Source: Pavona decussata (lineage: Eukaryota). Taken from it: a DNA stretch of 64,000 bases. The DNA is taken from positions 186,001-250,000 of the forward strand of contig CDRNST010000018.1 in NCBI GenBank assembly GCA_977016875.1, given 5' to 3'. How positions within the stretch are numbered: the first letter of the stretch is position 1; the number at the start of each line of letters is the position of its first letter. The notes beneath the pieces were generated by a model. That model was not told the DNA's origin. It did not search any database and saw nothing but the letters and a program-made list of their open reading frames with translations. A program made the position numbers and the translations under genes. Shown here in pieces: positions 1,607 through 64,000 of this stretch.

Positions 1607-1633
1607 ATCGCTTCTCGGCCATTTGGCCAAGAT
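1607..1633 (+). ncRNA. U2: U2 snRNA 5' fragment (nt 1-27)
   Basis: ATCGCTTCTCGGCCATTTGGCCAAGAT. Confidence 0.9.
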
Positions 1634-1775
1634 TTGTGAGGCTTGTGGGAGGCAAAGCTCTACCAGTTTTTGTCTAGAATTTGTGATTTCCTGGCGGAAG
1701 CCCTGGCCTTTTGGCCCCCGGGTCTTTCTTTTGTCTTTCTTTTGCTTTTTTACTTTGTTTTAAACGGCCGGTACG

Positions 1776-3643
1776 ATGACGGTACGTTCTGTTCAGGAAG
1801 ATGATGTTCTTGCCGCGGCCTTGCCGCAAAATGTCCGTGTGAGTACTGATTCTGCTTGGTTATATGTAGATGTCTCGAATGACGATAATTTCTCTGACTG
1901 CAATTCCAAATTTGTTGACGAGGTTTCTCGCTTGGAGCGCGAGTATTTTGATTCTTTACACGTTGTGGACTCTCCAGAGAATGCTGTTTACACCGATTGC
2001 AATGCGCCGTTAGATGGAAGCCGCCCGCAAGGAACCCTGCTTAGTGACTTTGAGAAAACGCATTTCCATGCCCTGAATGTAACTCCGGACCGTCCGTGCT
2101 CGGCCTTCTTCAAAACGGATTCTTTTATGCCAGGATCTGAAGTTTTTGATCTTCTTAAGAAGGAAGGTTTCCTGCCGGAACACATTCGATGCCTCCAACA
2201 TAAACCATCTGGTGAGATTTTTCTGACATTTCGCAATGCCGAATTACGCAATGCTTTCCTGTCTAAAACGTCTCTAGTGCACCGCCAGCGTGGCCAGTCG
2301 CGGAACTTTGTGCCCAACAACGCGGAGCGATCGGTCACCTTTTTAACGGTGTACGACGCGCCGTATGAGCTCAGTGATACAGCTATTATTCATTGTTTGT
2401 CGCCGTTTTGTGATGTTGCATGGTATCGTCGTGGGAAATATAAGGGTGAGCATTCTGCTGTTTACAATAGTCTCCGGCACTAACGTGTCATATCCATCAT
2501 GCCATTCCTAGCTTTCTTCGTTTTGGCAAATTTTTAATTCGCTTGAATCACGACGGCCAAGTGCCCACATGTAGGAAGTGCAACCGTTCGGGGCATAAAG
2601 CGGCCGAATGCCGCAACATTGTTTGTTTTAATTGTGACGGGCTCGGTCACACTTCTCACGTGTGTGTGCGCCCGATGTATTGCTGCATTTGCAAGAGTGG
2701 GCAACACCTTGCCCGCTCATGCCCTTTTTCCTGGTATCGCCAAACCGGACGAAATGCTGCTCAAGGTGAACCAGCTGCTGATGTGAATGTCCATGAAGGA
2801 GAACAGGGTGGCGCTGATCACCCCACCACCAAGGAGTTTGCTGTTTACGATCCCCCGATTCCTTTTCGCCCTGACGACCCGTGGCCTGAGGAAAATCCCA
2901 CTGATGATGCGTCTGATCAACCGATGCCCGAGGATACCGCTGGCGGCCCTCCCGTTGAGGTTGCTGACCCACCAACTCCTGTTTTGAGTGATCTGGAATC
3001 TGTTTCGTCTGGCGGATTGGCGAGCTCGGCGCCGAGTACCTCTGGCCCATCGCTCGTTGATTCGCAGGGTTTTCTGCGTCCTGTGTTTGATCAACCTTTG
3101 GATTCTTCTGTTTCTGTTCCATTTCCTGTACCAACCCCCGAGTCTGTGCCTGTTTCGACGCCAGCGTCAATTGATCTTCGTGTTTTGCCTTCTGAATCTC
3201 CCGTGTCGTCTGTGGTCCCGCTGTCTACTGCTTCTTGGGCTGACATCGTGGATCACATTCCTGTTCCTGTTGAAGTTCCTGTCGATCTGCCTGCGACGCC
3301 AACATCTGTACCACCTGCTCGGAGATCTGGTCTGAGGCCGCCCTTACCGCCACGACCTACTGGGCGAATTGCGAGACGCAGACCTGCGTCAATTGCCAAC
3401 CTTTCTCACATAGTAGCACCGGCTCGGAAGACAACTCAGCCGTTGCGCATTGTGGCTCCGCCGTCGCAAAAAACCACGCCGGTTGATGCTGCGGCTTTGA
3501 GCACACCACTACCTAATGAGGATAACGACCAAGATCTCATGGAAACTGAGGAGAGTTCAGGGAAGCGTAAAGACCCCCCTGCTGAGCTTTCAAGCTCCTC
3601 ACGATCAACTCCTGCGGTTTTGATAGTAGGAAGGAATTTTTGA
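1776..3643 (+). pseudogene. E1 ORF1 (RRM-like + CCHC knuckles + Pro/Ser tail), frameshifted ~2483-2543
   Basis: PDRPCSAFF, VYDAPYEL, CRKCNRSGHKAAEC, CFNCDGLGH, CCICKSGQH. Confidence 0.85.
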
Positions 3644-62829: not shown

Positions 62830-63306
62830 AGGAGAAAGAGACGCAAATTTACTGCTTTATACGGAAGGTGTCACAGGACACATCTAGCTTTTTCCCTCGA
62901 GTAGGTCGTGAAAGTGAGAAAGTCATCGCGTTTCATTCTTTTAAGCGACTAGCCCATGACAACTCGCGTGAAACGCGGAATCAGCTGCAAATCAGTAATG
63001 AAGTAAGTCACCCATGAGTGCCTCGAAACTACTTTCTGTTCACTTTCTTAGACAAATTGCCAGCGGGTAACTATTAAATGTGACTATTTGTCGCTTTCAA
63101 TACTGCCAGTGCCAGTTTGCTCATAGTTCAGCAGCGTGTCGTGTCTGTTTTCTGTTGGTGGTTAAAGTACAACGTCACAAGCCAGTAGACAGCTTACAAA
63201 CGGCGGCCAGCTGTGCAACAGAAGCTGGAAATGCGACAGTTTTTGGGCCACAATATCTCGAGGCTACGGAATAAGAACCACCCTTCATCCCGCAAACTTC
63301 TTCGCC

Positions 63307-63331
63307 ATCGCTTCTCGGCCATTTGGCTAAG
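63307..63331 (+). ncRNA. U2: U2 5' fragment (nt 1-25)
   Basis: ATCGCTTCTCGGCCATTTGGCTAAG. Confidence 0.9.
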
Positions 63332-64000
63332 CCAAGTGACCTGTATCCTTGTTTTTTTTTTTAAAAGGCAGTCCTAAGTATCCGCCGGGGGGGGGGGGGG
63401 GGGGGGGAAACGGCAAAGCCTTTTCCCCCATTTGCTTTTCTTTCCTGTGTTGGCTCTTACCAGTACGATGCCGGTTCGTATGATCAGGGAAAATGATGTG
63501 TTACCATCTGCTTTGCCGAGAAATGATAATGATGCTGGCGGCGAAGCCTCCCAACACAGCCGAGTTATATGAGGATGTGTCCGATGAGGAATTTTGAGAC
63601 GCCAATTCAGAGTTTATCAACAAAGTAGCCCGTTTGGAACATGAGTATTTTGATGCATTACATGTTGAAGATGTGCCCGAGAACGCTGCGTATGCAAATT
63701 CTGATGGAAAAAATACCACAAGTGTACGAGATGTCAGCTCCTTTGAACGTGATCATTTTCACCCGTCGAACGTGACGCCTGATTGGCCTTGTTCAGCCTT
63801 TTTTAAGACTGATTCCTTTATGCCGGCCCACGAGATTTTTACTGCTTTGGAGTCGGACGGTTTTCGTGCCAATCACATCCGGTGTCTTCAAAGAAAGCCA
63901 ACAGGTTTTCCTTACCTTTCGCACTCAAGCCTTGCGTGATGCTTTCCTCCAGAGAAGTTCTTTTGTTGTTTCTATGCGCCCTGGCAGACGATTTGTGCCT
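63332..64000 (+). mobile_element. E63: Tx1 element 5' end, ORF1 related to E1, runs off the window
   Basis: MPVRMIRENDVLPSALP..., EHEYFDALHV, PDWPCSAFFKTDSFMP. Confidence 0.85.

Follow-up and report, generated by a model that had tools for sequence, protein, structure and literature searches.

A 64,000-nucleotide stretch of the Pavona decussata genome (assembly G000, 602 Mb; contig C18, positions 186001-250000; hereafter the window) carries tandem units of the U2, U1 and 5S RNA genes that are interrupted by long interspersed nuclear elements (LINEs). These elements meet the genes at many different positions, and the question raised by the locus is whether each position represents a separate target site. 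An initial annotation of the window had proposed that it does, with all three genes of the unit partitioned among lineages whose endonucleases have shifted specificities. We analyzed 250 kb of the array (C18:1-186000 and the window), and we consider it highly probable that the window records a radiation of L1/Tx1-type LINEs in a decayed array, with target-primed reverse transcription (TPRT) at four fixed nick sites (U2 T39, U2 G36, U1 nt 3/4 and 5S nt 29; nt, nucleotide), insertion in the orientation of the gene, and 5′ junctions that are lineage-specific and heritable.

Priming sites and 5′ junctions in U2

We named the families of U2 inserts after the position of their 5′ junction in U2. DNA and protein comparison separated at least 10 families in two deep groups, with amino-acid (aa) identities of 36-70% between families and only 36% ORF2 identity between the groups (ORF, open reading frame). 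Clade A consists of F47a, F47b, F50a/b and F50c; clade B consists of F27, F28, F31, F33a, F33b, F42 and FX, the last of which is found on contigs C627 and C897. Intact copies of two families sit upstream of the window: F42 (5261 bp; ORF1 459 aa, ORF2 1165 aa; C18:19185-24445 and seven more copies at 100% identity) and F50a (5314 bp; ORF1 424 aa, ORF2 1177 aa; C18:141738-147051). Pfam searches found zf-CCHC (PF00098) in all ORF1s, zf-RVT (PF13966) in the C-termini of ORF2, and, in the ORF2s of F42, F50a and the window elements E1 and E2, an N-terminal apurinic-type endonuclease (APE; Exo_endo_phos, PF03372) and a reverse transcriptase (RT; RVT_1, PF00078). The endonuclease is this N-terminal APE and not the restriction-like PD-(D/E)xK enzyme of Utopia. 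The best solved relative is LINE-1 ORF2p (E 1e-85, residues 11-869, covering APE, tower and RT), and a database relative, P0051, bears the automatic name 'Transposon TX1 putative 149 kDa'. Judged from their sequences, the elements are L1/Tx1-group retrotransposons of the kind without long terminal repeats (LTRs). They also carry signs of TPRT, namely AATAAA and A(n) at their 3′ ends and either duplications of the target (U2 nt 36-47, 36-50 or 39-42) or a deletion of nt 28-37/38.

Every 3′ junction with AATAAA and poly(A) in the 250 kb of array precedes either T39 or G36 of U2. T39 follows A(n) at positions 7198, 14889 and 55920 of the window, at the ends of E1, E2 and E54 (these and all other elements described below are on the plus strand unless stated otherwise). 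E1 (F27, clade B; 1634..7197) is a full-length but decayed LINE with ORF1, APE and RT; it begins after U2 nt 27, ends in A10, and removed U2 nt 28-37/38 upon insertion. E2 (F33a, clade B; 9167..14888) begins with a U2-like 7-mer, TCAAGTG, ends in a short A tail, and encodes an ORF1 of 583 aa and an ORF2 with one stop (735 + 332 aa); a 98.8% identical copy lies at C18:158983-164799. E54 (F28; 54584..55919), an ORF1-only element (390-397 aa, CCHC), begins after nt 28 and has an F27-type tail that ends in A9. G36 follows A(n) at 27921 and 39770. The first of these junctions belongs to an internally deleted 1.43-kb F47a element with a clade A type tail (26490..27920), which begins after nt 47, ends in A11, and is associated with a target duplication of U2 nt 36-47. 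A genome-wide pattern scan for A(n) followed by T39 or G36 returned 22 matches, all in the sense orientation, and a control scan returned none. We conclude that the poly(A) 3′ junction marks the priming nick, and that this nick falls at two U2 positions only, before T39 and before G36; both positions had been listed in the initial annotation, and both are present with poly(A). The two bonds lie within GUAGUA (nt 33-38), the branch-point-recognition box, and given the ambiguous A, both would be compatible with a cut after GT in GT/A.

By contrast, the 5′ junctions occupy many positions. All of those previously listed (U2 nt 25 plus the 7-mer, 27, 28, 31, 42, 47 and 50; U1 nt 10; 5S nt 41) were found in the sequence. 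In U2, they are located at 1633 (nt 27), 54583 (nt 28), 22040 and 44786 (nt 31), 27927 and 39776 (nt 42), 26489 and 38344 (nt 47), 16891 and 33832 (nt 50), and 9166, 57403 and 63331 (nt 25), the last three being followed by TCAAGTG or CCAAGTG, equivalent to U2 nt 27-33 without A26. For elements with both ends paired, a 5′ junction at nt 42 and a 3′ junction at nt 39 correspond to a duplication of nt 39-42 (F42), nt 47 and nt 36 to a duplication of nt 36-47 (F47b), nt 50 and nt 36 to a duplication of nt 36-50 (F50a), nt 27 and nt 39 to a deletion of nt 28-37/38 (F27), and nt 25/33 and nt 39 likewise to a deletion (F33a). Most clade B elements have 5′ junctions at U2 nt 22-33 and target deletions of 5-16 bp; 5′ junctions at nt 42, 43, 47 or 50 are associated with target duplications of 4-15 bp. 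Users of nt 39 are clade B, and users of nt 36 are clade A (F47a/b, F50a/b/c) together with several other clades elsewhere. The 5′ position in U2 is thus a separate heritable trait of the lineage, and yields a duplication or a deletion. All inserts are co-oriented with the interrupted gene, including that in the minus-strand 5S gene, and the strands of the ORFs bear out the earlier observation to this effect.

Two inserts can stand in tandem in one gene. At 26490-32790 the order is U2(1-47), F47a, A(n), GTATCTG (U2 nt 36-42; 27921..27927, plus strand) and F42. The F42-family copy (27928..32790; 91.5% identical to the intact 5261-bp F42) begins after nt 42, lacks the last ~190 bp, and is fused at its truncated 3′ end to spacer position 944. 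At C18:318 kb the order is F50-like, A(n), U2(36-47) and F47b-like. These tandem arrangements are repeated use of one bond in an already occupied gene.

If each U2 5′ junction (nt 25, 27, 28, 31, 42, 47 and 50, and also -29) were instead due to a separate endonuclease with a shifted specificity, at least seven U2 sites would be partitioned among the lineages. The 5′ positions are lineage-specific and are kept across diverged families and species (nt 47 here and on ctg26384 from a related species; nt 50 in F50a, F50c and the distant relative P0120), a pattern compatible with lineage-specific cleavage of the top strand. However, in every lineage and species examined, the poly(A)-marked priming nick fell at U2 position 36 or 39 and nowhere else in that gene; the -29 junction lacks poly(A) and goes back to one duplicated event; and the F33-type junction holds an inherited, mutated U2-like 7-mer that a cut-and-join model does not predict. 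Hence, we regard shifted endonuclease specificities behind the seven U2 5′ positions as improbable, and this part of the initial annotation was not upheld. With a small number of fixed nick sites, each lineage's endonuclease would set the priming nick, and a read-through transcript carrying U2 5′ sequence would anneal to the target and reproduce the 5′ junction. Because the U2-like 7-mer without A26 is kept in three families that are ~30% diverged, we lean slightly towards such a read-through or co-transcription origin of the 5′ junction over a lineage-specific top-strand cut. Precedents for transcript annealing in R1 and R2 point the same way (PMC4494074).

We also considered the possibility that there is no real target specificity, and that a few chance insertions hitch-hiked to high copy number through unequal crossing-over. 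The copies in C18:1-158 kb are mostly identical inserts in higher-order repeat blocks, and in older copies the divergence of the element is similar to that of the flanking unit, as hitch-hiking would predict. By contrast, at least seven families with 36-70% ORF2 identity insert at just two U2 bonds, insertions at these bonds recur in other species and in distant taxa whose spacers differ, tandem reinsertion took place into duplicated targets, and close relatives are essentially absent elsewhere in the 602 Mb. Close F42 relatives were found in arrays only, bar one 828-bp, 5′-truncated copy (C58:1800382-1801209; 96-97% identity) that has no U2 after its poly(A). Similarly, the F33-type leader is confined to C18 and one 63-bp match on C28, and ORF2s that are at least 51% identical occur only on C18, C627 and C897. 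Target specificity is strong, not absolute, and we consider an origin of the pattern by hitch-hiking very improbable. We attach even less weight to the idea of one Keno-like family whose junctions came to differ through post-insertion deletions. Several junctions in the window are truly secondary (-29, -46, spacer positions 548, 944 and 1095, and a fusion of F33b with a 5S element); nonetheless, different 5′ junctions go with different leaders and ORFs, ORF2 trees contradict a single family, and where an intact element has both ends, the target is cleanly duplicated or deleted. Neither of the two observations that had been named in advance as fatal to a multi-lineage interpretation was made: the genome-wide search places copies almost exclusively in the arrays rather than at random sites, and ORF2 identities as low as 36%, together with the trees, contradict a single family with deletions. 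The same identities and trees support the earlier proposal that many distinct lineages share one U2-U1-5S array in which all three genes are targets.

Outside the U2-U1-5S arrays, we observed ORF2s that are 43-46% identical to F42 at C135:161546-164932 and 524443-527829, C177:1454723-1458109, C21:93056-96508, and C423:56163-58190 and 164579-166606. The ORF2 is intact (1164 aa) at the C135, C177 and C21 loci; both C423 matches are partial, and one of them contains a stop. These ORF2s may represent further site-specific lineages with other targets.

Insertions in U1 and 5S

The U1 insert in the window, FU1c (56276..57350), is an ORF1 fragment that begins after U1 nt 10, with the junction at 56275, and is 3′-truncated and fused to U2 -46. 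Its ORF1 has 39% aa identity to that of FU1a. Two ORF1-only U1 elements in the higher-order repeat (2092 and 2070 bp; ORFs of 510 and 468 aa, CCHC) begin after nt 18 and nt 20, respectively, and end in A(n) followed by ACTTACC (nt 3/4), with duplications of 15-18 bp. Genome-wide, there are 19 junctions of A(n) with U1 nt 3, including one on C67 and one at C18:432140. The U1-resident ORF1s form at least five diverged families; FU1c and two more elements (5′ junctions at nt 12/13 and nt 18) are diverged members of this group, and no close copies were found of the U1 element at C18:411.6 kb. Across the genomes examined, the 5′ junctions of U1 elements span nt 10-32, lineage by lineage. The U1 elements share one 3′ site, nt 3/4, which lies in the 5′ splice-site-recognition sequence.

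Both E54 and the 2.07-2.09-kb U1 elements have an intact ORF1, a 3′ tail and poly(A), and have no ORF2. Such ORF1-only derivatives, whether in U1 or, like E54, in U2, presumably borrow the ORF2 protein of the autonomous partner whose 3′ tail they carry. The ORF1 of E54 is closest to the U1-resident group, and its 3′ tail is of F27 type, a mixture that would fit passengers following whichever ORF2 recognises the tail. We also observed that U1-resident 3′ tails in three genomes share the sequence CATTGCACT...CTGGGGG...AAAYACA(n) (C18:10360-10449 and 14427-14516; L051:16307-16396; L056:144-233); CATTGCAC is also a U1 small nuclear RNA (snRNA) sequence, corresponding to U1 nt 64-71 here.

The insert in 5S (60451..62788, minus strand) consists of a CCHC-containing ORF1 and the N-terminal part of APE and is truncated within ORF2; its ORFs are on the minus strand, like the 5S gene. 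Its 5′ junction, after 5S nt 41, is at 62789, next to the host 5S head (nt 1-41; 62789..62829, minus strand), and the same head is found on copies with 67-90% identity on C194 and elsewhere on C18. A gapped pattern scan of the genome identified a single poly(A)-5S junction, A(12) then CGGTTCTCG (5S nt 29), at C18:441953; this lies 2.85 kb downstream of a partial copy of the 5S element, the distance expected. Together, the two junctions imply an element of ~5.2 kb with a 13-bp target duplication (nt 29-41); by its coordinates, the full 5S element would occupy ~436.7-442 kb of C18. The APE fragment is 30-37% identical to those of the U2 lineages.

Array structure, amplification and secondary junctions

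The host unit is ~2 kb long, with the order U2(+), U1(+), 5S(-), and is repeated in tandem from the start of C18 to beyond 400 kb. It also occurs on C332, C501, C627, C650 and C897, where many units are intact. In an RF00004 profile search of the genome, which is not a census of fragments, the best 48 matches were intact U2 genes. In the window, Rfam searches gave 3 U1 genes and 7 5S and 9 U2 matches at or above the gathering score, and BLAST gave 15 U2 fragments and 5 intact and 3 partial 5S copies; neither method found an intact U2 gene there. Units in the window are 85-94% identical to a chosen reference unit (14889..16891, plus strand), which comprises U2 nt 39-192, U1 at 15241-15404, 5S on the minus strand at 16249-16367, and the next U2 head, nt 1-50. 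A second unit (7198..9166, plus strand) has the same organization (U2 nt 39-192; U1 7544-7707; 5S, minus strand, 8541-8659; U2 head nt 1-25), and a U2 head of nt 1-27 precedes E1 (1607..1633, plus strand). The U2-U1-5S array exceeds 400 kb, and the window forms its decayed, inner flank. The array is interrupted at C18:164820-186204, ending at window positions 1-204, by ~21 kb unrelated to the array or to the LINE families, bounded by a stub of U2 nt 38-59 and by U2 nt 54.

In C18:1-158 kb, the array forms a higher-order repeat in which inserts recur as identical copies with identical flanks. Thus, copy number in the array increases mainly when higher-order repeat blocks undergo unequal crossing-over and take the inserts along. 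Segmental duplication is also evident in the window, where a block of at least 8 kb, consisting of the F50c 3′ part, U2 -29 to +31, and F31 with following sequence, is duplicated at 91-93% identity. Because the block is duplicated, the -29 and nt 31 junctions each represent one event. The U2 -29 to +31 fragment lies at 21981..22040 (plus strand) and again at 44727-44786. The first copy follows E3 (F50c, clade A; 16892..21980), which begins after nt 50 and shares 68% aa identity with F50a. The second follows a composite (38345..44726) made up of a short F47a (38345-39769), U2 nt 36-42 (39770-39776), an F42 5′ fragment and, from ~40626, the F50c 3′ part; the composite ends at the same -29 fusion as E3 and corresponds, as a segmental duplicate, to the blocks at 26.5 kb and 17-22 kb. 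Both -29 junctions (21980/21981 and 44726/44727) lack poly(A) and AATAAA; the tails of all other clade A elements can be aligned as far as a conserved AATAAA...A(n). The -29 junction, which the initial annotation had listed as a 3′ end of an element, does exist, twice, but it is a single post-insertion deletion that was later duplicated, and not a target site.

Downstream of each U2 -29 to +31 fragment lies an F31 (clade B) 5′ part that begins after nt 31. The first (22041..24255) comprises the leader, ORF1 and the start of APE, and is followed by a BEL/Pao-type fragment (24256..25584, plus strand) that is fused to host spacer unit position 1095. In the second (44787..53816), F31 extends to ~46545 and a BEL/Pao LTR-retrotransposon body continues up to spacer position 1095. 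Within the F31 element, this body (46546-53812) contains a DUF1759 gag, Peptidase_A17, an H2C2 integrase region and DUF5641, and the sequence at 24256-25584 is a partly deleted copy of the same insertion. The presumed 3′ end of the nt 31 family proved to be BEL/Pao-type sequence, and no genuine 3′ junction of this family was found. We likewise rejected the spacer position 1095 junction as a LINE end: the sequence is BEL/Pao-type, and a 92% identical copy of 24256..25584 runs past this point at C196:3179719-3181047.

The remaining inserts are also incomplete. An F50a-family copy (33833..36878; 88-94% identity) begins after nt 50, is internally deleted, ends at position 4302 of the 5314 in F50a, and is fused to spacer unit position 548. 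An F33b element (clade B; 57422..60450) retains the 7-mer, the leader and a decayed ORF1 and APE; both it and the 5S element are cut within ORF2, and the two are fused tail-to-tail at 60450/60451. A further F33-type element (63332..64000), with the CCAAGTG variant after U2 nt 25 and a conserved leader, runs off the end of the window. We conclude that the -29 and -46 junctions, those at spacer positions 548, 944 and 1095, and the F33b/5S fusion go back to later deletions, the insertion of one LTR element, and segmental duplication, and that none is evidence for a target site.

The 5′ leaders of the F33a, F33b, F31, F28 and I12 families have in common the motif GGCAGTCCTAAGTACC...GGGGGGG-AACGGCAAAGCC-CCCCC (window positions 9199-9245, 57455-57500, 22075-22120, 63360-63420 and 54640-54670), and a similar GGCAG...TAAGTA motif is present in U1 elements (L040, L056). 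No ribozyme or other Rfam family matched the leaders in the window at E values up to 1. RNAalifold analysis of seven leaders gave a weak consensus hairpin between the G-run and the C-run, with one covarying pair.

Relatives, known systems and significance

Elements at the same sites were found in other genomes. In a related species, ctg26384 (ENA ERZ25071797) carries the same U2-U1-5S unit with different spacers; intact elements there have 5′/3′ junctions at U2 nt 47/36 and nt 22/39, another has a 5′ junction at nt 28 (its 3′ end was not recovered), and an ORF1-only element sits in U1 at nt 13/3. More distant U2 relatives with a 3′ junction at nt 36 are P0045, P0034 and P0120 (5′ junction of P0120 at nt 50), and another element in the P0034 array has its 5′ junction at nt 43. 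P0130 is inserted in U2 in the sense orientation with its 3′ flank starting at nt 39, as are F27, F28, F33a, F42 and FX, and this is the Keno site; the 3′ flanks of F47 and F50 start at nt 36 instead. P0117 (L056:140-2265, ENA ERZ25072724) is an autonomous U1-specific element with an ORF1 of 620 aa and an ORF2 of 1185 aa; it is preceded by the tail of another element and U1 nt 3-32, implying that its insertion made a 30-bp duplication. Two elements, P0016 and P0101, occupy U5 snRNA; the insertions use two distinct bonds, located within loop I and beside it. The U5 inserts were located at L052:1680-1720 and 6745-6800, and L055:6555-6640 (ENA ERZ25072724, ERZ25073789). At one U5 junction, A(n) is followed by GATTTCCGTGG, and tandem copies are separated by 12 bp of U5; at the other, which lies in loop I, ...AAAAATC is followed by CTTTTACTAAAG.

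Trees of ORF2 made with FastTree and IQ-TREE grouped the nt 39 elements in one clade (Shimodaira-Hasegawa-like approximate likelihood ratio test (SH-aLRT) 100), with the nt 36 elements outside it in several clades. The clade of the U5-inserted P0016 is sister to clade A (SH-aLRT 96; ~45% aa identity). A simpler scheme in which the two halves of the tree correspond to the two U2 sites was rejected, as P0120 (nt 36) falls on the clade B side. The trees indicate that targets were switched several times within one radiation. Beyond the window, we tentatively suggest, at somewhat less than even confidence, an old, multi-phylum, Tx1-like radiation in which the APE repeatedly switched among invariant small-RNA motifs: the U2 branch-point box (a pair of bonds separated by 3 nt), the 5′ splice-site-recognition sequence of U1, the region in and around U5 loop I, and the 5′ half of 5S. 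Under this reading, the U2 nt 36 site, and LINEs specific to U1 or U5, would represent undescribed target classes, and ORF1-only passengers would move between host genes by exchanging 3′ tails.

Several observations weigh against our interpretation. The 5S duplication of nt 29-41 is pieced together from 5′ and 3′ junctions of different copies. The autonomous U1 element, P0117, is known from another genome. P0120, an nt 36 user, sits on a long branch on the clade B side, and nt 39 is therefore the only site that corresponds neatly to one clade. Most repeated junctions within the array arose by amplification; the evidence for independent insertions comes from comparing families and species, and does not extend to individual copies. 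The Tx1-clade label is provisional and derives from the layout of the domains, the preference for particular target sites, the automatic 'Transposon TX1' names and the similarity to L1 ORF2p. Lastly, one sequence feature, the U2-like 7-mer, is all that speaks for the proposed co-transcription of the 5′ junction.

The U2 nt 39 site is already known from Keno, and 5S targeting as such is known from Mutsu. Keno elements (KenoDr1, KenoFr1, Tx1-5_BF, Tx1-1_HM), like F27, F33a, F42 and FX, are APE-encoding LINEs inserted in U2 in the sense orientation with a 3′ flank from nt 39 (PMC4640811, PMC4494074); the likeness is one of site and APE type. Unlike the situation for Keno, many lineages coexist in one array here, and a second group, mostly outside the nt 39 clade, uses a bond 3 nt upstream (G36) with duplications of 8-15 bp. 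Utopia resembles the elements described here in its nt 39 bond, variable 5′ junctions, several lineages in U2 arrays and tandem insertions (PMC4640811), but has a PD-(D/E)xK endonuclease where the elements here encode APE. In both Keno and Utopia, U2 nt 39 is the first position of the 3′ flank, and the 5′ end differs from family to family, with duplications or deletions (PMC4640811). The zebrafish Mutsu elements (MutsuDr1-7) are, like the 5S element, two-ORF APE LINEs that are gene-oriented in the 5′ half of 5S, and several subfamilies coexist in one 5S array (PMC5340908). The 5S element, which we liken to Mutsu, differs in that 5S here is part of the U2-U1-5S unit, with a site defined by nt 41 (5′) and nt 29 (3′). 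Hence, the coexistence of several lineages has precedent in Utopia (PMC4640811) and in Mutsu subfamilies (PMC5340908).

R1 and R2 of ribosomal DNA are alike in occupying a tandem multigene array, in combining a precise 3′ junction with a lineage-specific 5′ junction, in the coexistence of lineages, and in a copy number governed by recombination. They differ in that the hosts here are RNA polymerase II-transcribed snRNA genes and RNA polymerase III-transcribed 5S, the elements have no Rfam ribozyme match, and co-transcription is something we infer only. E54 and the U1 elements, as ORF1-only LINE derivatives, recall HAL1 ('half-L1'). Unlike HAL1, they have specific insertion sites, their ORF1s belong to a single group with members in both U1 and U2, and the 3′ tail matches that of a resident autonomous lineage.

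A 2015 survey of snRNA-gene-specific transposons listed only Keno and Utopia (U2), Dada-U1 and Dada-U6 (PMC4640811). In the accessible literature, we found no description of the U2 nt 36 bond, of U1- or U5-specific LINEs, or of joint occupation of U2, U1 and 5S in a linked unit, and Repbase may hold unpublished entries. The U2 nt 36 and U1 sites therefore appear to be undescribed, in agreement with the initial annotation. Of the other sites it had put forward as possibly new, nt 42 is a 5′ trait of F42, an nt 39 user, -29 is a deletion, and 5S targeting as such is known from Mutsu. U1- and U5-specific LINEs would extend the 2015 list (PMC4640811).

Site-specific LINEs are models for how an endonuclease reads DNA, and development of such elements for safe-harbour gene insertion is under way, to date with R2. 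This one array offers APE-type elements for four bonds in three genes, with natural intact copies among them, and close relatives elsewhere are aimed at U5 and U1, such that the determinants of target specificity are directly comparable across these elements. The material also separates the priming nick, which is conserved and falls at few positions, from the 5′ junction, which is lineage-specific and falls at many; the two are often conflated. Array recombination, rather than retrotransposition, sets the copy number. If targets were indeed switched repeatedly within one radiation, sister clades with different targets, such as clade A (U2 nt 36) and the P0016 clade (U5), would constitute a natural map of the determinants of target recognition by APE.

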